Shown piece by piece: positions 31,901-64,000 of a stretch of 64,000 nt of DNA; the stretch's first letter is position 1; each line of letters starts with the position of its first letter. The stretch is from Cyanophora paradoxa CCMP329 (lineage: Eukaryota; Plantae; Glaucophyta). The notes under the pieces are model-generated. The model was not told where the DNA came from and made no database searches. It saw nothing but the letters and a program-made list of their open reading frames with translations. The position numbers and the translations under genes are program-made. Location: the NCBI GenBank assembly GCA_004431415.1, contig QPMI01000609.1, positions 161,440 through 225,439 of the forward strand. The letters are read 5' to 3'.

Positions 31901-32403
31901 TGCCCAGCTGCAGGCCCGGTCTAGAATCTAGATCTAGATCTAGATCTAGCTATGCTACTATATTACCGCCACCCCGCCAATATTAATTACCCGGTTAGAA
32001 AGCGCTCGTTAGACGACTAGCAGGGCTGACCGGCACGGGGGGCGGAGAAATGAAACGGGTACCGGTACACACGTAATAATATAATAAACTTAGCAACTTG
32101 ATTATATATTAAGCATATTAAACATGACATTTAATATAAATAGGTTTATTATTATATAATAAGAATATTATTAAGTATATATATAATACAGCAATTATAT
32201 CATATTAATAAATTGTAGCAACATTAACGTACCCCCAGAGAATCTTTAACAATCATTTACACTATACCTAATAGCCAAACCTAGCTCGAGAGGAACCTCG
32301 ATGTGACGGACATCTAAGCAGTGAATAGTAGAATAAACATTCCTGCCCCGGGGCAGTGCAGCCTCTGGTCTGTATCAGGTCTCCGCCGGCACGGAAATGT
32401 TTA

Positions 32404-35400: not shown

Positions 35401-38400
35401 GCGGCCAGGCGCATGCACAGAGCTTGCGAATCGCTTAAACAGAATCTCGAATGCATATAGCATCGATGTGCGGGGCTGCGGAGGCGAGCGCGTGCGGAAA
35501 GATGTGCAGGCGTGGCCAGGATCGAATTTTTGCGTCGGCTGGGTTCTCGTGCCCTGTCGCGCCTGCAGAGCTTGCGAAAAGCTTTAAAAAGGAGTCAACT
35601 GAAAATTGTAGCGATGCGCTCGCGTGAGGATGCGAGGGCGCGCGGAAAGTTGTGCAGGTCCGTCGAGGATCGAATTTCCGGGGTCGGGTGGGTCCTCGCG
35701 GCCTGGTGCATTTAGAGACCGTGCGGAAGGCTTCTTCTACATCTCAAATGCTTATGCTATCGTTCCGCGCATGCGCCGCGGCGTGGGCGCGCGGAAAGAT
35801 CTCCGGGCCTGTCTAGGATCGAATTTTTGCCGTCGGGTATGTCCAGGATCGAATTTTTGCGTCGGCTGGGTTCTCGTGCCGTGTCGCGCCTGCAGACCTT
35901 GCGAAAAGCTTTAAAAAGGAGTCAACTGAAAATTGTAGCGAAGCGCTCGCGTGAGGATGCGAGGGCGCGCGGAAAGTTGTGCAGGTCCGTCCAGGATCGA
36001 ATTTCCGGGGTCGGCTGGGTCCTCGCGGCCCGGCGCATTTAGAGACCGTGCGGAAGGCTTCTTCTACATCTCAAATGTTTATACTATTGCTCCGCGCATG
36101 CGCCGCGGCGTGGGCGCGCGGAAAGATCTCCGGGCCTGTCTAGGATCGAATTTTTGCCGTCGGGTACCTTCCTGCGCTCTTCCGGCTCCGAAAAGCGGAT
36201 TTCGGGGTGCGCAGGCGCTGCTATGTCTATGCGCGCCCGTAGGCATGCATTGCGCGCGTCGGGGGACCGGGCGGAACCGGCCGGATCAAATTTCGGCCGA
36301 CTGTTCGCACTGGAGCGCCGACGGCGCTTGAAATCGAGCTTGCGGCGATGCGCTCGCCCTCGCGCGGCATTCTGTATCGTTCTGGGGTCTCTCTGGCGCG
36401 ATTTCGTCGCGGGACCGGGCGGGACCGGGTCCCACCTTCTGACTCGGACTGCATTTGTCGGAGGTTAAGTACCGGAATTGATCCAGAGGGAAATTCGATT
36501 TCGCGCGACGCCCACGGGCGAGCGGTCGTCTTAGGGGAGCCAGGACGCTAAAAATGGATCTAGAGGGGTCTGTGGGGGTTCGGGCAACTGTGTAATGTCC
36601 ATTAATCGCGTCCGTGTCGAGGCAGAATTAATAATTCTGCCTCGAGGGAGTGTGACACGGAAATTATTTAGCAGGGGGGATCTTGAGTGGAAAAAAAGGT
36701 TAAAAAAGGAATTTCGCTCGGCGGTTTTTGGGTTTGAGACAAGATCCGTGCTCCTGCGGAGCACTAAGTACGGCGAAGCCTCGCGGACGCCCTCGCGGCT
36801 GTCACAGTAGGCCTATAGGGCACTGGCCAGCGGCCTGGCCGATCGCGAACAGCTTTCTGGTTGGAAGCTGGCCGGCTGACGGCCAGTCCAGCTACCGCTG
36901 GCCGGCTAGAGGAATATAACTAGAGGAATATTAATGTACTGAGGAAATAAAGGGAGGCCGGAGCAGGTTGAGATTAGAGGAGATGAATTATATATAATAT
37001 TGTTGAGAGGGAGGCCCGGGAGGGGCAAGGTTCTCGCGGCCAGGCGCATGCACAGAGCTTGCGAATCGCTTAAACAGAATCTCGAATGCATATAGGATCG
37101 ATGTGCGGGGCTGCGGAGGCGAGCGCGTGCGGAAAGATGTGCAGGCGTGGCCAGGATCGAATTTTTGCGTCGGCTGGGTTCTCGTGCCCTGTCGCGCCTG
37201 CAGAGCTTGCGAAAAGCTTTAAAAAGGAGTCAACTGAAAATTGTAGCGATGCGCTCGCGTGAGGATGCGAGGCGCGCGGAAAGTTGTGCAGGTCCGTCGA
37301 GGATCGAATTTCCGGGTCGGGTGGGTCCTCGCGGCCTGGTGCATTTAGAGACCGTGCGGAAGGCTTCTTCTACATCTCAAATGCTTATGCTATCGTTCCG
37401 CGCATGCGCCGCGGCGTGGGCGCGCGGAAAGATCTCCGGCCTGTCTAGGATCGAATTTTTGCCGTCGGGTATGTCCAGGATCGAATTTTTGCGTCGGCTG
37501 GGTTCTCGTGCCGTGTCGCGCCTGCAGACCTTGCGAAAAGCTTTAAAAAGGAGTCAACTGAAAATTGTAGCGAAGCGCTCGCGTGAGGATGCGAGGGCGC
37601 GCGGAAAGTTGTGCAGGTCCGTCCAGGATCGAATTTCCGGGTCGGCTGGGTCCTCGCGGCCCGGCGCATTTAGAGACCGTGCGGAAGGCTTCTTCTACAT
37701 CTCAAATGTTTATACTATTGCTCCGCGCATGCGCCGCGGCGTGGGCGCGCGGAAAGATCTCCGGGCCTGTCTAGGATCGAATTTTTGCCGTCGGTACCTT
37801 CCTGCGCTCTTCCGGCTCCGAAAAGCGGATTTCGGGGTGCGCAGGCGCTGCTATGTCTATGCGCGCCCGTAGGCATGCATTGCGCGCGTCGGGGACCGGG
37901 CGGAACCGGCCGGATCAAATTTCGGCCGACTGTTCGCACTGGAGCGCCGACGGCGCTTGAAATCGAGCTTGCGGCGATGCGCTCGCCCTCGCGCGGCATT
38001 CTGTATCGTTCTGGGGTCTCTCTGGCGCGATTTCGTCGCGGGACCGGGCGGGACCGGGTCCCACCTTCTGACTCGGACTGCATTTGTCGGAGGTTAAGTA
38101 CCGGAATTGATCCAGAGGGAAATTCGATTTCGCGCGACGCCCACGGGCGAGCGGTCGTCTTAGGGGAGCCAGGACGCTAAAAATGGATCTAGAGGGGTCT
38201 GTGGGGGTTCGGGCAACTGTGTAATGTCCATTAATCGCGTCCGTGTCGAGGCAGAATTAATAATTCTGCCTCGAGGGAGTGTGACACGGAAATTATTTAG
38301 CAGGGGGGATCTTGAGTGGAAAAAAAGGTTAAAAAAGGAATTTCGCTCGGCGGTTTTTGGGTTTGAGACAAGATCCGTGCTCCTGCGGAGCACTAAGTAC

Positions 38401-39968
38401 GGCGAAGCCTCGCGGACGCCCTCGCGGCTGTCACAGTAGGCCTATAGGGCACTGGCCAGCGGCCTGGCCGATCGCGAACAGCTTTCTGGCTAGAAGCTGG
38501 CTGGCTGACGGCCAGTCCAGCTAGCGCTGGTCGGCTAGAGGAATATTAATGCCATGATGTACTGAGCGAGGAAATAATTAAAGGGTGGAGCAGATCGATC
38601 TAGATTGAGCCCCATGAGAGTATTCATTTGAGCTCTTAATTATCGAACTTTCGCTAAAGGGTGGAGCAGATCGATCTAGATTGAGCCCCATTCTCTTCAA
38701 AGAGGGTGGAGCAGATCGATCTAGATTGAGCCCCATTCTCTTCAAAGAGCTACGGGAAATAATTAAAGGGTGGAGCTGAGTACCGTAGCGATGCCCATGC
38801 GTGAGCATGCGAGGGCGTGCGGAAAGCTGTGCAGGTCCGTGCAAGATCGAACTTTCGGGGTTGGCTGGGTTCTCGCGGCCCGGCGCATCTGTAAAGCATG
38901 CGGAAGGCTTTGTCTACATCTCACATGCATATGCTATTGTCCGCGCATGTGCCGCGGCGTGGGCGCGCAGAAAGATGTCCAGGTCCGTGCAGGATCGAAT
39001 TTTTGCCGTCGGCTGGGTTCTCGTGGTCTTCGGCGTGTTCGAAGCTTGTCGAAGGCTTTGATAAAATCTCAAATGAATATTGTAGCGATGCGCATGCGCG
39101 AGGATGCGAGGGCGCGCGGAAAGATGTGCAGGTCTGTAGAGGATCGAATTTTCGGGGTGGGCTGGGTCCCCGCGGCCCCGCGCATCTGTAAAGCGTGCGG
39201 AAGGCTTCTTCTACATCTCAAATGCGTATGCTATCGTTCCGCGCATGCGCCGCGGCGTGGGCGCGCGGAAAGGTGCCCGGGACCGTGCAGGTTCGAATTT
39301 TTGCTGCCGGGAGCCTTCCTGCACTGTTCGGCCTCCGAAAAGTGGATTTCGGGGTGGGCAGGCCGTGCTATGTCTATGCGCGCCAGTACGCATGGATTGC
39401 GCGCGTCGCGGGACCGGCCGGAACCGGCCGGATCAAATTTTCGGCCGACTCTTCGCACTGGAGCGTCGACGGCGCCCGAAATCGAGTTTGCGGCGATGCG
39501 CTCGCCCTCGCGCGTCATTCTGTATCGTTCTGGGGCGTCCCTGGCGCGATTTCGTCGCGGGACCGGGCGGGACCGGGTCCCACCTTCTGACTCGGACTGC
39601 ATTTGTCGGAGGTTAAGTACCGGAATTGATCCAGAGGGAAATTCGATTTTCGCGCGACGCCCACGGGCGAGCGGTCGTCTTAGGGGAGTCACGACGCTAA
39701 AAATGGATCTAGAGAGGTCTGTGGGGGTTCGGGCAGCCGTGTAATGTCTATCAATCGCGTCCGTGTCGAGGCAGAATTAATAATTCTGCCTCGAGGGAGT
39801 GTGACACGGGAATTATTTAGCAGGGGGGATCTGGAGTGGAAAAAAAGGTTAAAAAAGGAATTTCGGTCGGCGGTTTTTGGGTTTGAGAAAGAGGCTTCGC
39901 CTGAAAGAGGCTTCGCCTGAAAGAGGCTTCGCCTGAAAGAGGCTTCGCCTGAAAGAGGCTTCGCCTGA
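32404..39968 (-). mobile_element. Five nested non-autonomous Helitron2/Helentron-like elements (5 bodies + 5 x 16-bp 5' ends)
   Basis: Bodies 32404-33582 (A, 1179 bp), 33583-35104 (B, 1522), 35105-36739 (C, 1635), 36740-38368 (C, 1629), 38369-39888 (B, 1520), all joined at TTTGAGA|CAAGATCC; AAGAGGCTTCGCCTGA x5 at 39889-39968. Same family as 12318-14708, opposite strand. Confidence 0.88.
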
Positions 39969-40038
39969 AAATGCCAGAAGGATAGATCGATATCCGGACA
40001 ACATATATAATTTTCACGCAGAATTCAAATATTTAATA

Positions 40039-40113
40039 TTTTTTTTTTTTTTTTTTGGTGAATTACCGGCCACAGTCTCTAGACACCAGCACTGCGGGGG
40101 CTGCCCAGGGGGC
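40039..40113 (-). mobile_element. Short poly(A) retroposon (family R1) with 8-bp TSD
   Basis: T18 followed by GGTGAATTACCGGCCACAGTCTCTAGACACCAGCACTGCGGGGGCTGCCC (identical to 19031-19080); ATTTAATA at 40031-40038 and 40114-40121. Confidence 0.8.
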
Positions 40114-40488
40114 ATTTAATACCTATAGTAGCCGGCGCCCGTAATTTTGAAATATTTCGTATATATCATCAGAATTAAACCGGGTAAATAGGGAGGAGCG
40201 AGAGTGCTGAGGGATGAAAATCGGAAGGGTAGAAGGAATGATGGGGTACGACATCGACCTCCCGGCGGCGGGGGTCTGCAATCGCGAGAGGAGGAGAGTC
40301 GTGAAGAGCGCTATTAATATTGGTAGCTAGCTATATAGCTGTGCTGCATCGATCAGCTGCAGGTAATTCGGATTGTTTGCATGAACGCGCAACAAGTATC
40401 AGTACTAGTACTAGATTTAGCGCCCGCTCGAGCTCCACCTCCTACCCTCGCGCGCCCGCTGCCGGGGACCTCGTACGGCCGCGGCCCG

Positions 40489-40615
40489 CGACCCATGGCC
40501 GGCACCTAGCTAGCACCTTCGGCTAGATAGTTGACCGGTCGGAAGGGCACGTCACGTAGAACATTGATACATGTGCCGTGGTGTATCAATGCGACGTCCA
40601 CTTTTGCAAAAAAAA
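40489..40615 (+). mobile_element. 5'-truncated poly(A) retroposon (family R2) with ~16-bp TSD
   Basis: Ends CTTTTGC(A)8; flanked by GTACGGCCGCGGCCCG (40473-40488) and GTACCGGCCGCGGCCCG (40616-40632); second copy at 7047-7173. Confidence 0.75.
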
Positions 40616-42126: not shown

Positions 42127-42225
42127 CGGGATGGCGCGCTCGATAAGGGGAAGTGACCAGCCGCCTCCTCACTATTCGAAGCTCCAAAAAAGGGCTGAAG
42201 CTTGGCTATTAGTTGAAGGGTCGGG

Positions 42226-42400
42226 CTGAAGCTTTGCTATTCGGTACCCGTAGATCTAGACCAGCCGTCCCGGACGGCTGCTCACATCGCTTAGACCCAG
42301 GTTCGAATCCTGGAGTGAGTCTTATTCGACATCTTGCTTTCAGTCCGCGATGCGAAGATCTTTAGCTAGGACATGGACTAGAATATAGTAAGCCACCCGG
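42226..42400 (+). promoter_or_regulatory. tRNA T-arm / Pol III B-box module with upstream hairpin
   Basis: CCAGG-TTCGAAT-CCTGG (perfect T-arm, GGTTCGAATCC B box) preceded by hairpin CAGCCGTCC-C-GGACGGCTG; no complete cloverleaf. Confidence 0.55.
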
Positions 42401-42409
42401 GGCGCAGCC

Positions 42410-43495
42410 TTGGCTCATCTCTCGCTTGGTGCGCGCCTCCACACCCGTCGCCACCGCGCCCCGCGCGACGGGCGGGGCAGGGATCTCGACTCGCGACGCC
42501 CGCGCGGCGGGGTGTCCGGAACGCAGCGGCCGCGGCGGCCCATCTCTCGCTTGGTGCGCGCCTCCCCGCCTTCAGCGCCGCTCCCCGCGCGACGAGCTAG
42601 GTGAACGGAGGCGACCCGATTCGCGGCGCCTTTGCGGCAGGGCCGGCGCGGCCGGTTTGCACCGGCGGCACATGTCTCGCTTGGTGCGGGCCTCCCCGCC
42701 CTTCCTCGCCGCGCCCCGCGCAACGGGCGGGCGAAGGTAGCTCGACTTGCGGCACCTTCGCGGTGGGGGCGGCCGGGTAGCAGCGGCGGCCCATCTATAG
42801 CTTGGTGCGCGCCTCCCCGCCCTTCCCCGCCGTGCCCCGCGCGACAAGCCGAGCGTAGGCGACCCGACTCGCGGGGCTCAGCGGCGGCCCATCTCTCGCT
42901 TGGTGCGGGCCTCCCCGCACTTCGGCGCCGCGCTTCGCGCGACGGGGCGGGCGCAGGGAGGACCTCTCGCGGCGCCCGCGCGGCGACGGCGGCCGGGGCG
43001 CAGCGGCGGTTCATCTCTCGCTTGGTGCGCGCATCCCCGCCCTTCCGCGTCGCGCCCCGCGCGAAGAGGTGAGCACAGGCGACCCGACTCGCGGAGCATT
43101 CGCGGCAGGGCCGGGGCGGCCGGGACGCAGCGGCGGCCCATCTATCGCCTGGTGCGCGCTTCACCGCCCTTCCCCACCACGCCCCGCGCGAGAAGCCGAG
43201 CGCAGGCGCCCCGAATCGCTGCGCCTTCGCGGCGGGGCAGCCGGGGCGCAGCGGCGGCTCATCTCTCGCGTCGTGCGCACCTCCCCGCCCTTCGACGCCG
43301 CGCCCCGCGCGATAGCGCGGATGCAGGGAGCTCGACTCGCAGCGCCCTTGCGGCGGGGGCGGTCGGAACACATCGGCGGCCCATTTCTCACTTCGTGCAC
43401 GCCTCCCCGCCCTTCAACGCCGCGCCCTGCGCGACTAGGTGAGCGCAGGCGACCCTACTCGCGGAGCCTTCGCGGCGGGACCGGGACGGCCGGAG
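42410..43495. repeat. ~122-bp diverged GC-rich tandem repeat, 9 units
   Basis: CATCTCTCGCTTGGTGCGCGCCTCCCC-like anchor at 42416, 42541, 42671, 42792, 42890, 43012, 43139, 43260, 43382. Confidence 0.85.
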
Positions 43496-48900: not shown

Positions 48901-49110
48901 AGTCAACCAATGGCATGTTACCATGAGTAGGCTGCATGTATACTTAGCTAGTACATGCACACACTCGTACGCGAACTGTAACATATCCAGGTATCGCGAA
49001 CTTAGCTGTCGACATGAGAGCTAACTGGGTGAGCGGTAGCAAATGACCGGATGCTTGCAACCGGACGAACTAGGCCTGGCCTACGATATGGTAAGCCGCC
49101 GGAAGAGAAT

Positions 49111-49895
49111 CTGACCGGCGCCAACCAAATGGTTCGGGCTGAAGCTTGGCTATTCGGTACCCGTAGACCAGCCGACCCGGACGGCTGCTCGCATCGCTTA
49201 GACCAGGTTCGAATCCTGGGAGTGATCTTTTTCACCATCTTGCTTTCAGTCCGTGTACGAAAATCTTTAGCTAGGACATGGACTACAAAATAGTAAGCCG
49301 CCGAAGATAAGCTGACCCGCGCCAACCAAATGGTTCGGACTGAAGCTTGGCTATTCTGTACCCGTAGATCTAGACCAGCCGTCCGGACGGCTGCTCACAT
49401 CGCTTAAACCCAGGTTCGAATCCTGGGAGTGAGTCTTATTCGCCATCTTGCTTTCAGTCCGCGATGCGAAGATCTTTAGCTAGGACATGGACTAGAATAT
49501 AGTAAGCCACCCGGGGCGCAGCCTCGGCTCATCTCTCGCTTGGTGCGCGCCTCCACACCGTCGCCACCGCGCCCGCGCGACGGAGCGGGGCAGGGGTCTC
49601 GACCGCGACGCCCGCGCGGCGGGGGCGGCCAGAACGTAGAGACGGCCCATCTCTCGCTTGGTGCGCGCCTCCCGCCTTCAGCGCCGCGCCCGCGCGACGA
49701 GCTAGGTGAACGGAGGCGACCCGATTCGCGGCGCCTTCGCGGCAGGGCCGGCGCGGCCGGGTTGCAGCGGCGGCCAATGTCTCGCTTGGTGCGGGCCTCC
49801 CGCCTTCTTCGCCGCGCCCTGCGCGACGGGGCGGGTGCAGGTAGCTCGACTCGTGGCGCCTTCGCGGCGAGGGCAGCCGGGACGCAGCGGCGGCC
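49111..49895 (+). repeat. Two tandem ~201-bp B-box/T-arm modules followed by 3 units of the 122-bp repeat; direct repeat of 42226-42790
   Basis: CTGACC.GCGCCAACCAAATGGTTCGG at 49111 and 49312; CCAGGTTCGAATCCTGG in both; the first is followed by a T-run. Confidence 0.85.
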
Positions 49896-50389
49896 CCGCT
49901 TTCACTCTGGTTCACAGTCCCGCTGCACGCTTTCACTCCGGTTCGCAGCACCGGTGCAAGTTTCGCTCCCACTGTTCGCAATTGCCCGCTTTCACTCCAG
50001 TTCACAGCCCGGCTGCCATGTCTTAGCTGTGACCCCAAGCATGCAAGTACGGCGGCATCCACTGCGAGGGCACGCCACCAGCCACCCGACTCACAACGCC
50101 CCCACTGCCCACCTCCGTGGTTCGGGCCGGTAACATTTGATCACATCGCAGTGCATCCATGGCCCTGCTCCGGCACCAGCCGGCGCCCGCCCACCGGCCA
50201 TCCGGCGCCTCGTATATGCTGCCCCCATCACCTCCAGCGCCCGCGCCGCTGCCACCCAACGCCCTACGGTTCCACTGCAGGCTCCAAGGTAGGAAGGACG
50301 GCGGTCGCAACATTGGAAAGCACGCAAGCGGCCAACATCCGCCCCCACTAGGGCTCAGACACAGCCATCCACAAATATGGACTGTATTC

Positions 50390-51060
50390 AAAATATCACA
50401 TGTTCTTCGGACCAGGACACTGCTCTCTAAACGAGGAAGTAACTGAGTCGCAAGGTCTCTGACGGGCATGGAAGCATCAAGACGAATCACGGGTAAAGTG
50501 CGACTGGACTCGAGAGAGAATATCCAGTCACTATAACGTGCGTGGAGTCCTGGTATAGTACTGAGAGCTTCGTGATTATCTCCCGGGAAAGAGCCTCTCC
50601 ATACAGATGCAGGTGATACATCTAGTGATACGACAGCAAGTGGATCGTGAAATGAAAGAGATGCCTGAATTTCTTGCAGCAAACACGCTCCGCATCCGTG
50701 AGGTAACCACGGGCGTACCAGTACTCTGCAAAGATTTCCTGTGAGGAAAGATGGCAGCGCTCGACGAGACCAACAAGCGGGCGATCGTGATAGGCAGAAC
50801 TACATGCATTCAAAGCTGACAGTTGCTGTAAGTGGGTTGAATGGGAAAGGAACGCTCGAAGTTGCATGCCAAGTACGGCACCAGGTTGCGGGCGCCTTCC
50901 GCAAAATGCCAGTCAACCATGGTTTCCATAGATGCAGAGGCTCGGGAAAGATGCGAAACTTGACCGCGCAGTTTACTTCCGCGGCGACTACCATCAAGTC
51001 GGAAATGAGCGTGCTTTTACCCGCTCCGGAGGCGCTTCGAACGCTATATACGGGGAAGCA
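50390..51060 (-). CDS. Deoxynucleoside kinase (dNK family), frameshifted
   Basis: Collinear motifs across 1-bp shifts: YIAFE(G)ASGAGKSTLI (P-loop, 51010-51050), FPEPLHLWKPWL, QLRAFLS, LVERCHLSSQEIFAEYWYARGYLTDAE, VVSLDVSP, LHARYSDWI, PVIRLDA. Confidence 0.8.
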
Positions 51061-51959
51061 TCGCCTTGCGATCCACGCGTACGGTCGTCGGTGCGGCGTC
51101 TACAGATTGCATGATATAATTATACTACTATGTGATGAAAATGACATTCGAGGGGTACAGTCGCAATTCGAAACTTCGTAACTGAGGACCAAACAGCACC
51201 TGAAGCTGCCTATAGTAGTAACTTCTTGCCATTACAAGACATACGGTACATTGGTTCTCGCAAGACCTTTCAGCTGAAGCGTGGACGGATCATCCACGCA
51301 TCACGTCAGGTGCCATGCATAGCGAGCCGCGCGAGTTGTGATCTGATTCAACTGATCGATAACAGCACAGAACGACAATTCATCCGGCGCATCTGCTCAG
51401 CGTCGTCGAACGACAATTCATCCGCGCATCTGCTCAGCGGATTGTACGGTGTAAGTAGCGGCGCACGCGTAGACAACCCTCGCACGGGAAATGCAGTTTT
51501 TTATCTCTGAACCTTCGGATCATTCAACTGGACGGACCTCTTAATAGCACTGTCGATAGACAGTACGGAGGAGGATGCGGGTTTGGAGCACATGGACAAG
51601 CAAGTGCCCTACGGACGATGGGCCAAACTTGGGCTGTATCCGTGGGCCAGCTTGCAACAAGCCAACAGCACTTTACAACAAACCAATGACACATCAGACA
51701 CCGTCAATCCTGGGCGACTACTGCTAGTATTGAGGATGTGGAAGATATCCCGGCCCTCATACCAGCATCGGTCATAGATCATGTGCATCTTCAAATATGG
51801 ACTTCGTGTGCATTGCAGCGCGAAGAATAAGAATATATATACAGGCACAAACACCTCTAAACTAGCGTAACTGGGTCTGCATTGTAAGCACCGTAGCTGT
51901 AAGTAATTAGGTCTAAGGAACTAGCGCAGAATAGTGGTGGTTTCTGACAGAAAACAGAG

Positions 51960-52260
51960 TACCGTCTACATGAAATATGCCGTGGTATAACAGAAGCAAA
52001 GGACGCATGTACGCACGGCAGGAGGCATGTGATAAGTACCATCCATTCCGGTGTGAATATACGGAAGCGGCGATTGACGCTCCTATCTTCGAAGAATACC
52101 ATTATAGGTCTACCTAGATATGCAGCGCAGAAGGCGACTTCCAGATTTGTGGCTGCGGCGATAACAGTCAATTATGAAACCGAACAGACCGCTGAAGGCA
52201 ATACATTACATCAGTTCTCGGATCTCGCATGCGGCTGCAGTACGAATGCAGAACGGAGGC
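51960..52260 (-). CDS. OTU-like cysteine protease remnant downstream of the helicase
   Basis: Degenerate D(G)N near 52215, ATNLEVAFCAAYLGRPIMVF (compare OTU WG..lEi.a.a..l...I.V), and PLLLLYHG in a shifted frame. OTU domains are known in Helentrons. The catalytic Cys is not readable. Confidence 0.45.
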
Positions 52261-52949
52261 CCAAAATTGTGAGCCGGTTGCCATGGGGTACGTCGGGTAC
52301 GGCAGCTGAGTTGAGTAAAGGAAAAGAGGATGCATCGGATTAATGGACATCATCAGATCAACCACGTCGGAACGCAATCGATCCGCCAATCACATTTATC
52401 ACTATTACGCGTAAAAATAGGAAGGGTCCTTCGCAATCATGCTGTCAATTATTGACAAAAACATGCATCGTCCTGCTCCAGAATTACTGCGTGGAATGCC
52501 GCATCAGCCACTGGGAACTGCATTCTAAATACGAGACATATCAGATATAATAAAGGCGGACCTCACTGGAATTAGTTAGGAGAGACTGTAGCGGAAAGCA
52601 ACACGTTATGCATTCCATGTCGTAGATACGGGCAGACATTACACCAGCTATCGATAGTCGCATATCCGGAGGAACAAGCATGGCGCAGTGGATGCAGGTG
52701 AGGGATGCGACGAGTTACGATCACAGGTTCCTTCAGTGGCAATGAACCCCAAAGCTGCACTACACGACGCCTGCTCAAAGCAGCTGACAAATTCCGTGGT
52801 GGAAGAGCGTGGGTCGTGTGGGTAAGAGAGAAGTCGACGAAGTAGGCGTCGTCCGATCACGAGGTACACTGGAAGGCATCGCTGAAGAGCTCGAGGAAAG
52901 GATGCAGCGGATCGCTTGTTCGTCGACGTTAAGTAGACTCATTGCGCTT

Positions 52950-55900
52950 ACGCTTTGGAGTCTTGGGAGATGCACGCGGTGGGTCGGTGTGAGATACACG
53001 CGGGGGTCGGTAGAAGGAGCATCAATGCGTGTACGAGTACCGCAGCGCCAGACTTGGGAGTCGATGCAAATTTCTCGGCCAAGGTGCGCTGCTCTTCTAC
53101 CACCAGTTGCGGTTTAGCGACTTCAAAAACAGACGTGCCCAAGCGATATGAAGATTGTCTGACGGACACAATCCGCGTGGCCAGTGCACGGAGCCGGGCA
53201 TTCTCCCGTATATCCGACGGATTCGGAGCGAAGTACAACCAGCGGTCGAGTGACGGAGTGCTGCACATTGCAATGTCGGTAACTCGGAGACGTCGCTGTC
53301 GGAATCCATTGTGCCAGTGGGATCGCAGATTGGTGCGCACGTCCTTTGCCTTTCTTCCGTCTAGCCATAGGGTCACGCAGTACATTGGTGAAAATGATGT
53401 CCGCAGATGATCGAACCGACTACATGCGACATACGCCATGTTGTAGGTGAAAGCGCGTGACAAATCAACGACTATCTTGACAGTGTGAGGCCTTGACACT
53501 TGTGAACGGTTACAGCCCACGCCAGACGAAAAGGGAACTGAGTGCGAGAAGGAGCGGAACTTGTAGATTTTGCCGCATTCGTCAAACCAGGAATCACTTC
53601 GTGCTCAGTTTGAGTAGGCAGTGCTGAAGACTTGTCGTGGATAACTGGTTCGTTGATATGTCACGCTCAGACGGCTCAACACGTACGGCCTGGTAATCAA
53701 CACCGGCCAGTGTCACTTTCGTACGTCCGCGCTTCCTGCCGACTTTGTCGTCGTCAAAAGCCACATACATGGCAACTGGAGAATTCTTGTCAAGTAGCCG
53801 AACAGTCGACGAAGCTGTAGGTACTGGACCGTCAAACTCCCATCCAACCAGCGTCCAGCGCGCCATTTACAAGACATCGTGCGTGTCCTCATTGATGATC
53901 ATCATAACCCGCGAGCCAAGCAGAAGGTGAACTTCGCCAATAAGAGGTCGCCATTTTATTCTGCACCACGAACGCACAAGCTTAAAAAACAACTGATACT
54001 CTGGCGGACATGGGTTCGTACCTCAACCGGTTCAGCTGGTTTACACGTTTGGATTTGTGATCATACTCTCCTTCATCGAAAGCTCAAGTGTGATAATCGG
54101 AGCCAAATACCGACGGGACGTTGCAAAGAGACGATCATTGTTGTAATTCAGTACTTCTCTGTTGCAAGGGAAGACTCGCAACGCTGTTTCCCAGGCGGGG
54201 GATGCTAGTTCGCAAGCCAGTGCAGCATACCCCGACGGTTCTCCTCGGGGTTCACAGATCTGCACGGTGCGTTCACAGAAAGGCGAGCGGCGGTGCAATA
54301 CAGGGATGTAATGGTTTCAGAACGTACCTGGACAGAATGAATTGCTTATCACGGTCATCAAATTCTCCGACTCGTAATCGCAAACATGTGTCACGCCACA
54401 TGGTGTCTCCAGCTTGCCTGACGACCTCATCGAGGAAGATAGGGTGAAACAAAGACAGCCACAGGTGAATATCATCAACCAGTTCGCCACTGCGCTTGAA
54501 GGTACGCCACATCCGTCTTTCGAAAATGTTGTAAATCCGTTTCTCCTGCACTGGCGGAAGTTGGAAGAAATCCCGAAGCACAGGATAGATTTCCCTGCGA
54601 ACGGCTCCGCCACCTGGAAGATCTCCTGTAACCGCTGATTGATTCGAGGAAAGTTCTTGCCGCCAACAAAGCTGATCTCGTCAATAATGATAAGTTCGAC
54701 ATCACGGAACCTTGCATTCAATTGGCACGCTCGGGCGCAGATAAAGGATAGAATGTATTTTTTCGCCGTGTTTGGGAGGAGCCCAAAAGCTAGCACAGAT
54801 GACACGGTGCTACCTCGATGTTGAAGGATGCCACGCCAGACCAGGACATGAGTAATATGCCGCCATTGCCACACGGTTGCTGCATGTTTGCGTGGTCACG
54901 ACTCCAGTTGAGCATGTACTTAACAATGGTTTTGATAAGAAAAGATTTGCCAGTCCCGCCTGGACCAACACACGCAATGTGCAGAGGCTGCTTAGGGGAT
55001 ACGACAGGAAGCTCTTTGTGACGACATTCGGCATCCGGAATTAGCGGCCACAATAGATTTGTACCTGTTCATATAGTACAATTAATAAAGATCACCACAC
55101 CATCTAGAGCACGAGCAGCGTACTCAGCTTGGTTGAGTAGTGCTTTTCGAGCCGAGTTGTCATCTGACGAATCGCAACCATCAATTCCGCTGCCTTGGCT
55201 TCAGCTTATCCTCATTTCCGAGAGGCTCATCGAATCGAGGTCATGTAAATCAACTCCCGAAGAGGCGGGGGTCCAGCAGAGGTGCGGTAGGAACATCATC
55301 CGCACCAGAGGGCTGAAGTCATCCGCACCAGAGGGCCGAAATAGATACGTCGGAGTGGGCAGTGCCGACAACGTTGCATCACGCGCTACCGTTGACGTAA
55401 CTCGCGTCGGTACTATCGATGGCTCGTCACGAACGTCGTCGACCCCATTAAAGCCGACTGTTGGCCCAGGCGCAGGTGATGTACAGAAGAAGCAGTGCCA
55501 TTGTGGACCGGTTATCCGGTTTAAATTCTTGCCGGCGACCAAGCGAGCATCACGATCGAACTTCTGGAGGACCGTTCAATCCGGGCAGCCATTTGACAGT
55601 GAGTGAACTGAATATTGTACTCGATAGTAGCACGATGCCGGGTGACGGCAGCAGAAATGACGGCAGGAGTAACTTCATCTCGGACTCAACACCAAGTAAA
55701 TCACGTAGCTCGTTCCGAAATGGTACGTGCATCAACAGCAGACTGTACAGGCCTTCGGGTCACCATCCTTTGGAATTCGCACTCTCACAGTCCTCGGTCG
55801 ACGTCGCTGTTGAAGGATGTGGCGTTGAAAGGGCCTCAACAGAGAAGACCGAGGGCACACACTGCGCAGGCAATAAATGAGATAGAGCTCGAGGGCACGT

Positions 55901-58900
55901 GAGAACAAACGAATTACGACGTAAACGTTCACCTGGATCCCGCCTTCTTTGAGCGCAAGGGTGCAGTACTTTGCGGATGCTGTTTCGAATCTCTGCATTC
56001 GCCCACGCGGGATTAGGCTCCCAATCATTGAGTTCCGCTCATCCTCGTCTCCCTCACAATCAACGTTTTCAGACGTGAGATTTGCGTCTGGCCGCCTCCT
56101 TTTGGTGCATCACCAAGAAATGTAAGTTAAACCAGTTCATGTACTGCATGAAGGTTATAGATTCGAAGACAGGTTCTGCACCTGAGCAAGAAGAAATGTC
56201 AGTCAGTAGCGAGATTTCATTTGTACAATAAAAGACAGATTGGACACCGTCGGGATCCTTACTGCGAGCCATATAGTAATCAACCTGGTCGTCGGCCCAA
56301 GCATCTTGATCGTTCGGATTATGTTGCATTCGAAATTCGAGCTCCCGTTTATGCCGCAGGTGCTTTCCACGTTTACCAGGAGGTAGGCCCCGACAGAGCA
56401 CGATGATCGTGACGAAAAAAACAACGGAATGCCTGGACAGAGTGCCAAGCATGAGCATGCTGCATGGTTACAGGCGATGATATACATAAATGAGGCATAA
56501 TTATAATACTGGCTTACATTGATGCTACGCACCTAGACAATACAACCCAGCTTCCTGCTTGGACATTGTGCGACACCCAACATGGCATTTCGCATCTATT
56601 TCGCAATGCCGGTAGAGTTAATTTAGGGAACCGCGCAGCATCAGAAATGAGAAACATTACTTTTAGGAGGATCTGGTTAGTTGACGCATCCTCTGGTAGG
56701 TCATTTAGGACGTTTTCCACCGCCTTCATCTCCTCCGTCTCGTCTTTGGTCATATACCCTAAAATGTAAGCTGCTATCTTGTACGGATTTGTGACGATTT
56801 GGATATCCATATTAGCTTGCCAGAGCTGGATGATAATGTTGTGGAAATTGTTCGTGTAGCGATCATCCTGTGTGAAGCGCCTAAATATCACTTCCCGGTC
56901 CCCACGACACATAAACGTTCTTCGTGAGAGCTCCGCAGATGCGTTTTGGCGGCAAACACATGTGGAATCCGAAGCGACACTTGCACCGCTCCTTGTACTC
57001 GGCCATAAATTTGGCGATCCGGGCTGAACGAGCCACGTGCTCGTGCGGAGCAGCTTTTTCCATGGCCTGTAGCTGGTCTTCTAGCACGTTCAGCTTCGTG
57101 GCATCAGTGATAGGGTCATGCAACTCGGCGTTTTCGTCGACGTCGCAAGCTTGCGACGGCGACGAAATTTGCCCACTGCGGCGGGATCGATGCGACATGT
57201 GTGAGAGTGTTTATGTCGATTGAATCGTGCCACGTAGTCCTGTAGGCGGGGTGTAGCCCATTCTTGGGCGAAAGGACCTTCCGTCCGAGTTGCTACATTC
57301 AAGATTAATAGTGTGCAGCATCCTGGAAATTAGCAACAACGGTAATGGCTTACCTCGGTCTGAACAACCGTATCCAGCCACGCGCAGACTTGTTCGCCAT
57401 TGAAACCGGGTCTGCGGGGTCTAGGACGGGCGGGGCGTCGTGACACCATCTCGGTGCGCTCGCCCAGCCAATCACCAAATGTGCGTGAAGCGACCCTCGA
57501 CTCTGAACTTCATACCTTTGTAGAAACAGGTAAGACAGCAAATGTGCAGGGTCACAGGATTCAAAAACATCGGCGCACCGGACAAAGAAATCAACAACAG
57601 GCCAACCAAAAAGCACTTCACCAGCCGTAGATTGAAGAGGTCAAGCATGGCGCGAACCGTTCATCAAAATGCTCAGCCACAATGCCAGGATTCTCGTTCA
57701 GCAATTTTACAACATCGTCCCGATTCTTAGTAAATTCGGCGACGGCGGCGCTGACGGGAACTTGACAGGATCGATGGCCCGAAGAAGATCGGGCCAATGT
57801 AGATCATCGCTGACAGCGTCATATAAATATGAGGAAATCCGATTGTCGTAAACATGCTGTGTAATTTATTTCGTGCATTGTTCCAGTATGCGGCGGTTCC
57901 ACGAACCTGTACATGTGGTCTCGGACACATTAGCCCAAGGTCGGAAGTGCAATGAACACAAACATAAATTCACATTACGAGTCATCGTACGATAACACGC
58001 GTGCGAATGGCGAGAGCATCTAAGGAATGATCTTCAACAGTACTGTTGATTAAATTAAAGCGTCAGCAACCGTCATGGTGGTCGTTGACGTGACAGCATG
58101 TGCCTCGCGGTTTTCGCTGAAACAGCATTGACGATATTATCTCTGACAAAGTTAAATCCACGCCACGCATCGTCATCGAGTATAATCGAAATCGAATAAG
58201 AAGAGCGGCCGTCGCGTTGAAATGGCGGATGATGACGCGAGGCAACGGTGGGAAAAATTCACGTGCCGACAGTTGGATCGGTCTAGCTGGTCGTGTAAAC
58301 CATGCGTGCCTGACAATAAATTAGGAATGATATCAAATGTGACATTGGTCGCGGGCGCATCGCACCTGTTGAAAACAGACAGAAGGAGCACACATCTGTT
58401 TCCGGCGAATGGCACGCAGAATACGACCATCGTTCACAGAAGGTGCTGAGGGAAGTCCCTTTAAATTGACGAACCGACGGCAGATAGGACGGTCATGTGA
58501 GCCGAATCAGCATCGTCGTGTTTCCGATGTTGCGCTATCAGATCTCCGTGTCGCGAGGATTAATGACATTATCTGTCGTGCAGCATTCCACTTATCTATT
58601 TCTGCTAACAACTCCGATCGTTGGATCCCGTAGTTGTATGTTCTGATAATATATGTGTTTTGTAGTGTCACGAAGGCACTCAAGAACCTCGAAGCACCGG
58701 TCCAACCTGACACGATTATACCAGTCTCCCCACCTTTCGGCTTTCGCTGGTTGACCAAGCAAACTTTCCTCTAGGTGGCAGAGGAAATATTGATTGATGT
58801 TATTGATGGGATTGCACGGTACAAAGATAACGCGCCCTTGCGAGCCGAGCTGCCTTCACCGATCTCCGACGTTTTTCCTTTCGGCCCGGACGTGAATTAA

Positions 58901-60100
58901 CTGAGAATAGCAGGGCACGTGCAATATGAGCGACAACAAGATGACTCGCATTATACTGACAGACTCCGAACCTGTAATATTAACCCGTTGGCACATCAAT
59001 AATTCGGGTAGGTTAAGTCGGATAGAAGGTACGTGTACGTCATCCACATCCACACAATGCAGACGGTTCTTTGCACCGCTGAATTAGGTATAGTGTAGTG
59101 ACCGAGCAGTCCGAAAATACTTGGAACGCACCAAACTTGAGAGGGCAGAAGGTCGATCGGGGGCACACTTGAAAGCATATACACCGGCTGCAAATTCAAC
59201 TGTAGCTTGTGACGAAGGTATTCCGTGTAGCTTCATAATTGAACAGACATGACATCGCACGTCGCCCGTCACGCACTGACAGTCCTTACTGTACTATACG
59301 AGGTACTAGTACTCTCAGAGGCGATGCACTTGCACCGCAGAATATGTAATTTGTCTGCACGTCGTGATTCGGTGCAGCAACTACAAGTGCCCGATGCAGT
59401 ATAGCTTGAGAAGAACACTCTTGCAGCATCCTTCAGATCGAGATTGAGATTTCATTCCAGAATTGTACAGGTTCATAGCTTGCAGAGTCAGCAACAAACT
59501 AATGCAGGTTATAAGATGCAGAATAAATGCACTTTGCTAAAATGGTTTCAAAGTTGGCATGACGTTCCAGCGACCGATTACGCTGGGTGAAAACTTCGAA
59601 GTGCGCTCCTAGCATGTTCCGCGGTCCAACGAGAGTTAGATGCGTGACGAACTGCAGCACTGATATGTTAAGAATGAGAGAAGGCACGAAATGCAAAATA
59701 AAGAAACTCACCGGTATCGGCAGTCCGCAATGTCTGTCTATCCGCATTCGAATATTCGCTCCGACGGACAGACGCACGATTTTGCCCTACATCCGTACAG
59801 TTCAGGTAAGAGACCCGGAGAACAATCGCATTGAGACCCACACGTACGTAGCCGGCCTACATGATGCACGGACACACGGTGTGCATCCCAAGCTGGACGG
59901 TCGGCGAGGACCATGGCACAATATCCGCATGGGAAAATACCATCACGTGTAGTGTCATGTGCCCCTGCCATATGGTACCGCAAATCATGCTCGGTACGGA
60001 ATGCTGCGGTGCATGACGCAAGGACGGTACATCTATAGAAGAACTGCGACAAAAACTGAATTCAAGAACGAGCAAAAGATGTGCACAGCACATCGCAACG
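52950..60100 (-). CDS. Helentron-type RepHel: N-terminal C2H2 zinc fingers, HUH (Y2) Rep, Pif1-family SF1B helicase; spliced, with many frameshifts
   Basis: Zinc fingers CTVLASC...HMAGAH and CGYC...HRVSVH (~59860-60040); VRGTAAYW..KLHSM..GFPHIYMTLSA; YEVQSRGSLHAH (HUH); HKHSHTC, CRFGF; WQANMDIQ..YKIAAYILGYMTKDE; GPGGTGKS; IIIDEISFVG; DFFQLPPV; LDEVVRQ; TVHKCQGLT; MAYVACSR. Confidence 0.92.
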
Positions 60101-61961
60101 TCACCTCCGCGGATAAACTTGCGCTAGTCCCAGTTAGGTGATGAGCAGGTCGGATATATTACTTGCAATGTACTGAATCGGCGGATTGCAAGGTGCCTGG
60201 TAACAAGGACATCAGCATCCAGTGCACAGCACCCAAGGCAAGAACATTAGATGCGCACAAACGATGGAGCAGGTAATGACATGAAGTGCGAGTGAGAAGA
60301 GGGGAATTCATACATAAATTGCCTAGGAAGTGCAACAAGAGTTGCCATTTGAAAAGCTGTTACTGCTCTCATAATTATAAGTCAAGCTAACAAAGCGTCA
60401 CCATCACGGATTACCTGGCGCGATACAGTGTCTTGCCAGTGGTAGTGATCCTTGAATTAACAACCAGGTGACAAGATATACAGCGACGACGCTTGACAAA
60501 AACAGAGTGTAGGTACAGCGACGACTCTCGACAGAACCAGGTCGTAAGATTCTACGCGCATGCGCCCGATTAAAGCAGAGTAAGGTAGAGGACGCGATGT
60601 TCAACATATGCCAACGCCAATACGCACATGACTTGCTAGCGAAAGTAGTTGGAATCTGGACTCGACGGCGGCAGCTAGCATGCGACCTAAAGTAGCTTTC
60701 AGCGGGAACTGGCGGGTCCCGAGAAAACACGCTGGCACGCACGTGATCAGCCGTACTCCCGCCCTTGCGGCCGCCACCAAGGCGATAGTGCGCACTACGT
60801 ACGCGGTCCACCGATGTACCAGTAGCCGTTCGATGGAACCAAAGCTGATCAATCGGCGAAACTAACAACCTTGCGCCGGTAGCGATGAGAAACCGCTACC
60901 AAGTACTCGTGCAAGCTTGACCCGCGTTCCGGTAGCCGGTCGCAGCAGCTGCAGGTCCCATGCGCGGTAACTAAAGAACGCCGGTGCGGAGGCAATCAGC
61001 TGCAGTCATCCAGGGGGTGCTTCAAACAAAAGACCTGATGACCACGTAATTCATACTGAATCCGATAGCTGGTCGCGCAACGGTAACGGCATTACCAGAA
61101 CGGCCGTCAAAACGGGTACTGTATTACATTGATGCCTGAAGATTGCATAAACGAGAGCACGAAAACGCGCGAACATGAAACCATTACTATAGCTGAAATT
61201 CGTTAGTCGATGAGACAAGTTGATACCAGAGTATACGTAAAGTAGCGCGATCGCAACTCAGAGTCCCACTTGTCGACCTCGGCCGTAGTCTGCCGAAGTG
61301 TAAAAGGGTCCGAATACTTCGTAACATTGGCGTTGGAAAGACTCCCGTAGGTTGGGCAGCTGCAACCCTGAAGCCGGCTAGGGGGCCCGTGTGGGGTAGG
61401 CTCTTCCTCCTTCGCCTCATCGTTTTGACAATATTAATATTGGTACTTTCTCGAAAGGAGGTTGACGTGACCAGCCGTGACCAGCCTGATATCGCACCGC
61501 ATACGGCAATGAAGCGGTCTCGGTGCGCAAATCACGCGCGAAGAGGAAATGCGCGCACGAGAGCTGCTCACTTGGACGCCGAGCCGCGCAGCCCATCGCC
61601 GAACGACAAGGACCGGTACGAAGCTGCACACAGCAACACGCACCGTCCTGGCCTTTCGGACGGCGTGCAGCAGGTGTGCACGCGCTGACGGCTCACAATC
61701 ACGACGAAGATGACGCTCACTCGTAGTGCTGCGGCGCTGCAGCAGGCCTACAGTACCGTGTATAATATGAGCTTAATAGCAAGTTCCAAGGGCAACAGCG
61801 ATCTTCAGGGTATGCCACGGCCGCTAGGCATGGCGGAGTACATCACGAGATACGTCGTCGCCTCCAGTATCCCAAGTACAGTAGCTACAGTACCCGATCT
61901 GGACCTTAAGCCTGCAGCTACAAAAGAATGAGAGTGTGTGCATGTGTGCTACAGACAGCGA

Positions 61962-62027
61962 GTTCGTGTACTCTACAAATCATTTGATCACAATTTCGTG
62001 TACTCTACAAATCAGTTGATCACAATT
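61962..62027. repeat. 32-33-bp tandem duplication
   Basis: TTCGTGTACTCTACAAATCA(T/G)TTGATCACAAT x2. Confidence 0.8.
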
Positions 62028-62361
62028 ACGAAAAGAGACATGCTCAAGAAGTGCAGGTAGCTATATAGATACAGGCTAGACTACAGCCCTGCAGCTTCCG
62101 AGTGCGATGCGCGTGAGGCCCGAGAAGCCTAATCAAGTGCATGGATTGAATCCATGTGCCGGATGAAGAAGTCCTTTGCCTCCTGGCTGCAACTAAAAAA
62201 ATACAGCGGCGGCTGAAGCAGAAGATACCCGAGCTTGAAATGCAAGATGGTCGGACACCCTGGCACCAATTTGCAGGAGGAGTGCGATCAGTGTGGCTTC
62301 ATGAATACCAAAACTAAATTAAAACAGCATCTACATAGCCTATTTGCAGGAAGCATATATA

Positions 62362-64000
62362 TCAGTCATCAATAACAATCACATCATTATCGACGATTTC
62401 GAAGGGACAGAAGGCCTGCTGTATACGGGCAATCTCATCGGCTAGCTCGGAATCGCGAAGCCTGAGCAAGGTGGTCCGCGTCTCTGCCGCCTGAACAGCC
62501 TCATAGGTTGCTTTAGCCTCAACGAGCGGACCACGAAAGCCATCCTCGCCAGGCTGCGAGCATGCCTTGGAGACGCGAGCTCCGGCCGCGGCGATATCAC
62601 GCTTCTCCTTGAGTAGCCGATCGGCGATCGTGCTGCGTTCGTGCAAAGCTGTAATGTAGGCTCGGAAGAAGGCTGCAACCTCGCGGGACACGGTGTTCTC
62701 TTGTGATGGGACATCGAGAAAGACCTCGTTAATGCTGGTGGACGTCTCAAACGCTGCGGCCACCGCAGCGGCCGCATAGCGCGGGACCTGCCTTGGCAAC
62801 GTCAGAATGCCGCCGACGAGACCGAGAGACTCCAGGACACGGCAGTTGCGCGCAAGATTCGCGACGGCATTGACGATAACAAGGCACTCGACCCCCTGGG
62901 GGCATACAACGGGGATCACAATGCGACGAAGGGTAGAAGAAGAGATGGCTGATGCAAAGCGAGCGATGTCTGAGGCCCTATATCTATGGTCGAACAGGGC
63001 TGCAGCAGAGAGATCGAGCGATATGAGATGCGGAAGCAAGGCTATACCAGAGGCTACAGGTTGCAGGCAACAGTCCGAAACGGGACAACGTAGTACAACG
63101 AGGGACCGAGGCAGGGACTGCATCCGCATGCAACCAACAGGCGAAGTTGGGATCTCAATTTCAAGATGCGTTGTCTGGTACGGGCCTTGGAGCTTGCTGC
63201 CGTCACCTACCCAGCGGGGCTCGAGGTTGATGTGCATGTGCGAGGCCATGCAGGTGACACACGTGCGGAGGGAATGATATGAATGTGTGGGACCGCAATG
63301 TGAAGAGTCGTTCCACATGGTAGGTTGTTTCAGTGCACTCAAGCCGCAGAATGACAGGGGGCCGGCCAGCGGCGGCAAGTCCTGTAAGGTGTTGTGGGAT
63401 CCGCGAACGATAACCTCCTGGCTTCAAGCCGGGCGTCGACGAGTTGGCTATAGTTGGTAGCGTAGTGGTACGCGATGGCAGTACCGGAAATGACAAGTTT
63501 ATTGATGCGAAAAGGCCCGGCAGACGGTTTGACAAGCCTGCGCGTAGTGCGAGGATTTGGTAAGTAATTTGGCCGAGCAAAGAAGCAGCGCTGTGGCTGC
63601 GCACGGGAGGCTGCGGTAGATAGGGATGCAGATGCCTGGCGCTGTTGGCATATCCGCGTGAGCAGCGTCTATTACGCCGAGATCTTCGGCCGCAAGGTCG
63701 TCCACAATCAGCGTCTTGGCACTGGTTGTCATTGCAAACGTAGCCATCCTACATGTACTGGGCGAGCATGCTCCACGTCGAGTGAGCTAGTAGACAATGC
63801 AAGAGCACGCCGATCATCGGGGATGGGAGATGATGAAGGTTGGCACGAAAGCCCAGAGGATGAGCGGTGAAGAAAGTCAGCGATGTACGGGCGCCGCCAC
63901 ACAGGATCTGCAAATGCGGTGGACACGATGCGCAAGAAGTTGCTCTCTGGGTGAGGAGGTGGTACACCCAGCGGCAAAGACATCATTAATATCAGACATT
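62362..64000 (-). CDS. RNI-like leucine-rich-repeat protein (5' part frameshifted or outside window)
   Basis: 338-aa ORF with LLPHLISLDLS, STLRRIVI, NCRVLESLGL, TSINEVFL spacing typical of RNI-like LRRs; collinear upstream ORF fragments. Confidence 0.5.

Follow-up and report, generated by a model that had tools for sequence, protein, structure and literature searches.

A putative deoxynucleoside kinase gene of giant-virus affinity beside a Helitron-type RepHel gene in the glaucophyte Cyanophora paradoxa

The stretch of DNA analysed here, called the window, comprises 64,000 nucleotides (nt) of the glaucophyte Cyanophora paradoxa CCMP329 (GenBank assembly GCA_004431415.1, contig QPMI01000609.1, positions 161,440 to 225,439 of the forward strand), and all positions are counted from its first letter. 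On its minus strand lies a RepHel gene of the Helitron superfamily (about 57640-52951), followed some 0.8 kilobases (kb) downstream, in the same orientation, by a gene for a predicted deoxynucleoside kinase (dNK). An initial annotation made from the sequence alone had described a dNK directly downstream of, and co-oriented with, a RepHel; the RepHel motifs found upstream on the same strand agree with this description. The kinase motifs it named are real and collinear, and its coordinates (50390-51060) match the gene nearly exactly; the strand, which had been left unstated, is minus. The features of the locus are collected in Table 1.

As it stands in the window, the dNK coding region has 666 nt; with nine missing bases restored, it would have about 675 nt (224 codons). 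As assembled, none of the three minus-strand frames is open throughout, the frame being broken nine times. Read across these frames, the motifs come in the order ATG, P-loop (..SGAGKST), EPLHLWKPWL, GMQLRAFLSH, VERCHLSSQEIF, LHARYSDW and PVIRLDAS; the plus-strand translations of 50300-51200 hold no dNK signal. The P-loop reads ..E-X-ASGAGKST at 51033-51010 and aligns to EGNIGSGKST of relatives, its first Gly falling at an assembly break. Both the Glu of the E-P..W motif and the base-binding Gln are present, in that FPEPLHLWKPWL and GMQLRA align to EPLDDWAPWL and GMQLRA of P0002, a complete dNK of 215 residues. The E-R-S motif reads VERCHLS, with Glu and Arg kept and Ser replaced by Cys as in the nearest relative, P0001; P0002 has ERS. 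The region of the ATP lid (RxxxRxRxEE) overlaps three inferred missing bases, and the best path through it, ..CMERLF..REIITKLSVL.., gains 7 bits over the single-frame path, its exact residues being uncertain. The gene has its own ATG, which precedes the first beta-strand by 3-4 residues, an arrangement shared with the stand-alone relatives P0002, P0004 and P0005, and a read-through bridged with an X at each break runs for 224 residues without a stop.

By its sequence, the gene belongs to the dNK family (Pfam PF01712), the identity proposed in the initial annotation. This was borne out with A2, a profile built from P0002 and its kin, to which three pieces of the gene match collinearly (profile positions 3-53, E = 1.5e-7; 48-108, E = 4.8e-9; 145-187, E = 2.5e-3). 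A2 in turn matches the solved structures of Drosophila dNK, human dGK and human dCK at E = 1e-26 to 1e-21 (1j90, E = 1e-26; 2ocp, E = 1.3e-24; 2a2z, E = 8e-24). The Pfam search suggested in the same annotation did return dNK, at best with E = 7e-4 for the piece 50625-50912, but no single piece reached the gathering score (the best has 19.8 bits, the cut-off being 27). Among its relatives, P0002, P0003 and L005 pass the Pfam dNK model at 46-121 bits, P0002 with E = 8e-12. Against a profile of virus-context sequences only, the X-bridged read-through scores 47 bits over positions 3-191 of 212; blastp finds 36% identity between it and P0002 over 197 residues, and 56% between it and the P0001 fragment, while a frameshift-aware alignment to P0003 and P0002 gives about 39% identity (88 of 225 columns). 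Less was gained from other searches: the best match of the C-terminal piece in the PDB is a dNK, at a marginal E = 0.33; a word search with the C-terminal part found no match; NCBIfam gave nothing useful for P0002 or the middle piece; and P0002 searched as a single sequence met no solved structure at E <= 0.01. The protein would thus share the family fold with Drosophila dNK and human dCK, dGK and TK2, as the A2 profile suggests, and it keeps the P-loop, the Glu of the EP motif, the Gln and the E-R pair, but its sequence is very divergent from those of the solved Drosophila and human enzymes. Phosphorylation of deoxynucleosides is its predicted function.

The frameshifts spoken of in the initial annotation do exist in the window, but read contigs identify them as deletions of the assembly and not as mutations. 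Public sequencing runs were compared with the window between 49900 and 55800, among them two DNA runs, X1 and X13, from different studies. Contigs of both show 0 mismatches to the window and many gaps, and each of the six pieces exceeds the matching window length by exactly its number of gaps (10, 20, 73, 21, 9 and 73), so that every gap is a base present in the reads and missing from the window. Bases are missing from this region, and probably throughout the window, at a rate of about one per 60 nt, that is, about 1.7% single-base deletions in the repeat region; where the gaps were displayed (12 of 104), each is an added C or G. By interval, there are 11 gaps in 50141-50411, none in 50412-50553, 6 in 50554-50967, 2 in 50968-51090 and about 1 in 51091-51399. 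Homology-guided alignment, for its part, calls for single bases omitted from the window and for no other kind of break: two near 51050 and 51032, three near 50907, 50893 and 50684, three more in the lid at about 50612-50555, and one at 50411. The two sets agree per interval (2 + 6 + 1), and the base added by the reads at 50411 puts the TGA at 50398-50396 in frame. The Cyanophora assembly was made from PacBio RSII reads with Canu and Quiver and a final Illumina majority correction, PacBio sequence being kept where Illumina coverage was nil (PMC6704402); sequence left uncorrected in this way explains residual deletions in repeats. Since the breaks are unidirectional and match the reads in number and interval, the gene is most likely open over its full length of about 675 nt, and the genomic copy is probably intact. 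Read depth was also considered as an estimate of copy number and was rejected, the runs being available as contigs and strongly biased by guanine-plus-cytosine (GC) content. In both DNA runs the contigs break off at 51399 and resume at 51411, with short loose ends; a minor local difference could account for this discontinuity, as could a repeat branch point lying between the dNK and the tail of RepHel.

These counts bear directly on the possibility that the gene is a decayed, non-functional captured fragment, as most Helitron captures are. Nine breaks in the window frame, the failure of every piece to reach the Pfam cut-off, a degenerate lid motif, an ERS that reads ERC, and splice joints near the dNK that are antisense and leave sense expression unsupported are what such a pseudogene has in its favor. 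Yet all breaks run in one direction and agree in number and interval with bases added by two independent DNA runs at 0 mismatches, a full-length frame extends from its own ATG to a stop and covers profile positions 3-191 of 212, and a copy only 56-62% identical retains the same motifs, all of which makes a pseudogene improbable. Given single-base deletions at this rate, apparent frameshifted pseudogenes in repeats and transposons of the Cyanophora assembly are suspect and should not be taken at face value.

Upstream of the dNK, the RepHel pieces follow one another in order on the minus strand: Rep, Walker A, Walker B and the C-terminal helicase. The Rep HUH piece matches Pfam Helitron_like_N weakly (E = 0.017, below the cut-off), and a word search with it found no match. 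Helicase motifs are Walker A (GPGGTGKS) in 54793-55068, Walker B (IIIDEISF) in 54320-54895 and, as motifs V/VI, TVHKCQGLTL in 53475-53660 and AYVACSR in 52951-53604, with Pfam matches to PIF1 (E = 6e-4 and 6.5e-3) and UvrD_C_2 (E = 0.021); in the PDB, Pif1 helicases of bacteria and eukaryotes come first, at E = 0.01-0.05. The C-terminal tail of RepHel had been called OTU-like in the initial annotation. It contains strings reminiscent of OTU, and Pfam found neither OTU nor Exo_endo_phos on any stop-free piece of 51100-53113, where broken frames limit sensitivity; an ESM Atlas search for OTU in the tail came back blank. Further upstream, on the minus strand beyond Rep, a C2H2 zinc-finger-like stretch at 59741-60061 (Pfam zf-C2H2_4, E = 0.002, below the cut-off) could belong either to the N-terminal part of RepHel or to a further gene of the element.

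Transcription and splicing of the RepHel gene can be followed as far as about 51820. Two of the public runs, X17 and X19, are only presumed to be RNA and are called RNA-like here; they contain short skips that the DNA runs lack, and three of these skips are canonical GT..AG introns on the minus strand within RepHel. Toward the 3' end, X17 has a contig of 1670 nt that extends over 51820-53591. The dNK too has contig coverage, at 50141-50967 and 50942-51090. Two further introns, one at the 5' end of the dNK and one between it and the RepHel tail, are canonical on the plus strand only, which points to a spliced antisense transcript across the dNK 5' end. RNA-like depth peaks over the GC-rich flank at 49900-50300.

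The initial annotation had also raised the possibility of a fusion to RepHel by splicing, with the dNK as the last exon or exons of a RepHel-OTU-dNK protein. Only about 0.8 kb does separate the two genes, which lie on one strand, RepHel is spliced, and RNA-like coverage is thin at 51283-51819 in the manner of an intron. However, among the joints listed none bridges 51820, or any RepHel exon, to the dNK; the two joints adjacent to the dNK are canonical on the opposite strand only; and the ATG of the dNK stands where it does in stand-alone relatives. This placement of the ATG argues for a separate gene, and the fusion was not borne out and is considered very unlikely.

The composition of the dNK is that of the island and not of the host, as the initial annotation had noted: its GC content is 51.5%, compared with 48.8% in RepHel chunks and 72-75% in the host flanks. 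At third codon positions (GC3) it has 48%, which resembles RepHel and is unlike the gene of P0002 (76% GC, GC3 92%). Nor is the gene single-copy, since P0001, a second Cyanophora copy, is 56-62% identical. As for linkage in other RepHel copies, one diverged genomic contig, present in both DNA runs, aligns to the window only at 50841-50886, 51004-51027, 52128-52156, 53417-53459 and 53877-53917; these parts carry the dNK motif GMQLRA..SH, the P-loop, the tail, AYVACSR and the helicase, all collinear. Collinear dNK, tail and helicase motifs on this contig suggest a second, diverged element with the same gene order.

An ordinary single-copy host gene for nucleotide salvage, with a Helitron inserted alongside, would be in keeping with the common presence of a nuclear dNK in eukaryotes and with a gene that has its own start and stop. 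It is set against 51.5% GC in surroundings of 72-75%, at least one more diverged copy, an order with RepHel that recurs, and no cellular dNK nearby among 1.84e9 protein representatives, and has little probability left.

When these 1.84 billion representatives were searched by HMMER with the middle dNK piece, only P0001 and P0002 were found at E < 1e-3. P0001, the nearest relative (61% identical in this search), is the Cyanophora paradoxa gene model tig00000492_g1397.t1 (EukProt EP00741 P001445); it comes from the same genome, and its 56-62% identity holds over the MQLRA..VERCHLS..EIFAEYW core. The model starts at an internal Met and is dNK-like for its first 66 or so residues, then continues as unrelated GC-rich, acidic sequence; it is probably a chimera mis-predicted across assembly frameshifts. 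Searches for the close-subfamily motifs (MQLRA..SH, ER[SC]HLS) in JGI metagenomes and IMG/VR gave no closer relative.

Outside Cyanophora the kin of the gene lead to dNKs on giant-virus contigs, in accordance with the viral flavor attributed to it in the initial annotation. The contig of P0004, the nearest relative of P0002, carries P9_TM, DUF5754, DUF5760, RING and F-box genes, and that of P0005, another P0002 relative, a fused topoisomerase II and Erv1/Alr; we take both contexts to be giant-virus-like. On its 19-kb contig, P0003 is accompanied by Peptidase_C14, DUF5832 and a weak NblA match, with no RepHel within 10 kb. In IMG/VR, motif patterns of the dNK gave 29 confirmed loci; ten bear the name GVMAG, and three lie on contigs of 157-198 kb. 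In 185,579 prokaryotic species genomes they gave a single locus. At the best viral locus, L005 (72.8% GC), a PBCV-type minor capsid P2 gene and a D12 methyltransferase gene stand beside the dNK (Pfam E = 8e-35). The giant-virus-like contigs L002-L005 share an unusually high GC content (70-73%), PBCV-type minor capsid genes (P2, P9_TM) and the same dNK subfamily, and L001, the contig of P0002, is alike in GC; a hint of synteny between L001 and L005 failed in direct protein comparison.

A maximum-likelihood tree groups the window copy first with P0001 (99/95), next with P0002 (100/99) and then with P0005 and P0009 (97/91). The dNKs of giant viruses (Nucleocytoviricota), including IMG/VR GVMAG and PBCV-like ones, have the same short stand-alone architecture (183-237 residues) and the same signature (EP..W.PWL...GAALG.QL, VERS), and the Cyanophora pair falls inside the viral set as sampled. 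On the other hand, the window dNK is only 21-27% identical to them by blastp, has a weaker lid, and sits in a nuclear transposon of about 50% GC and not in a viral genome.

Taken together, these results are best explained by a Helitron-superfamily element on the minus strand that would consist of a RepHel gene containing introns and, as cargo some 0.8 kb downstream of it, a separate dNK gene of about 224 codons that has none. Its kinase would be a member of a divergent dNK subfamily known otherwise from giant-virus contigs, and its frameshifts would be single-base deletions of the PacBio-derived assembly, with the genomic gene probably intact. The dNK was most likely acquired once by the Helitron lineage and then kept, because at least two diverged genomic copies retain it. 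By analogy with the dNKs and thymidine kinases of large DNA viruses, the enzyme would phosphorylate deoxynucleosides and so provide more local deoxynucleoside triphosphate (dNTP) for rolling-circle DNA synthesis. To this explanation as a whole, a Helitron with an intact dNK of giant-virus type as cargo, a probability of roughly 0.65 is given.

Several points weigh against this explanation. Helitron2-type termini (asymmetric terminal inverted repeats and hairpins) were not found in 49880-50450 or in 50000-64000, although the 5' end may lie beyond, and since the ends of the element are unfound, the status of the dNK as cargo follows from recurrence and composition. BLAST finds nothing in common between the RepHel/dNK region and the non-autonomous Helitron arrays of the window (12.2-14.7 kb and 32.4-40 kb). 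The low-GC tract extends from 44.5 kb to beyond 64 kb, well past the RepHel/dNK pair, so that composition alone does not separate cargo from neighbor. Taken singly, every RepHel Pfam match falls short of its cut-off, for the helicase because assembly errors have split its reading frames. The splice joints that reach the dNK are all antisense to it. Positions were seen for 12 of the 104 missing bases, so that intactness follows from counts and was not read off directly. Kinase activity is uncertain, for the Arg motif of the ATP lid is poor both in the window copy and in P0002, and ERS reads ERC. P0002 and P0003 come from metagenomic Logan contigs of 70% GC and unassigned origin. The tree was drawn, unrooted, from a virus-derived sample without cellular dNKs, with L005 lost in trimming and L007 and L022 excluded as near-duplicates.

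The extent of the tract and the unmapped ends, together with closest outside relatives that lead to giant-virus contigs, would also suit a dNK left behind by an endogenised giant virus, or belonging to another mobile element, and lying beside the Helitron in a low-GC tract rich in transposable elements. But the ten largest other frames of the tract match no Pfam family, viral or other (a result weakened by broken frames), the diverged contig retains the dNK, tail and helicase motifs in collinear order, and the GC3 of the dNK, at 48%, is RepHel-like in comparison with 92% in P0002. A viral remnant or unrelated neighbor is accordingly held to be improbable, though slightly less so than a pseudogene.

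Helitrons are known for the capture of host gene fragments, and a few of their lineages for carrying whole accessory genes (RPA-like, Fanzor, TET/JBP or OTU). If the dNK is cargo, a complete nucleotide-salvage kinase of giant-virus type would be a new functional class among them. Precedents for whole-gene cargo are Chlamydomonas Helitron2 elements with Fanzor1 or TET/JBP and plant Helitrons with RPA-like genes (PMC3627910; bioRxiv 10.1101/2022.06.16.496473). Like the Helitron2/Helentron elements with accessory genes, the Cyanophora element would combine RepHel (HUH Rep and Pif1-like helicase) with an extra complete protein gene; it differs from them in that the cargo is a nucleotide-salvage kinase, Helitron2 termini were not located and no endonuclease domain was seen. 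A full-text literature search found no publication pairing a Helitron with a deoxynucleoside kinase, the word Helitron was absent from the publications listed by a broader kinase search, and of the literature naming both Cyanophora and Helitron none, judged by title and abstract, is about Cyanophora Helitrons.

The supply of dNTP limits large DNA viruses, and SAMHD1 restricts retroelements through it. If the proposed explanation is true, a eukaryotic DNA transposon would possess a virus-style nucleotide-supply module, and dNTP supply could limit the transposition of DNA elements as it does the replication of large DNA viruses and the activity of SAMHD1-restricted retroelements. Genes would also be seen to pass between giant viruses and transposons in a glaucophyte, and for that lineage the biology of mobile elements is almost undescribed. 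More specifically, the Helitron lineage might have taken the dNK from a giant virus of its algal host, or given it to one, and the gene might have been selected because dNTP supply, or a dNTP-depleting host defense, limits replication; this scenario is tentative and, in its full form, rather unlikely.

Table 1. Features of the dNK/RepHel locus, with window positions, strand and supporting observations
Feature	Positions	Strand	Observations
dNK coding region	50396..51061	-	ATG 51061-51059, TGA 50398-50396; minus-strand frames, profile matches, frameshift-aware alignment
RepHel, Rep part (HUH-type)	56517..57640	-	..SLHAHLVI.. in 57353-57640; QANMDIQ...AAYILGYMTKDE (Tyr motif) in 56517-57080
RepHel, PIF1-like helicase part	52951..55068	-	translations, Pfam and PDB
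RepHel, C-terminal tail	51820..52450	-	covered by spliced RNA-like contig; OTU-reminiscent strings only
RepHel intron	55065..55123	-	about 59 nt, canonical GT..AG
RepHel intron	54260..54327	-	68 nt, canonical GT..AG; joint in RNA-like X17, absent from DNA runs
RepHel intron	53961..54021	-	about 61 nt, canonical GT..AG
Intron canonical only on plus strand	51091..51160	+	X17 joint 51090/51171, the 11 letters between being window 51161-51171; antisense to dNK 5' end
Second plus-strand canonical intron, between dNK and RepHel tail	51310..51365	+	X17 joint 51306/51363, GT..AG with the cut 3 places right
GC-rich tandem repeat	49070..49911	.	self-BLAST and GC profile; downstream of dNK, outside the RepHel/dNK unit, bounds the low-GC stretch there

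Beyond the RepHel/dNK unit, the GC-rich tandem repeat is related to a second one at 42218-43493; their units measure about 120-240 nt and are 72-91% alike, and the two repeats flank a low-GC block at 44.5-49 kb. Nested arrays, in which BLAST detects no sequence shared with the RepHel/dNK region, occupy 32000-40500, with periods of about 149 nt and about 1520-1635 nt.

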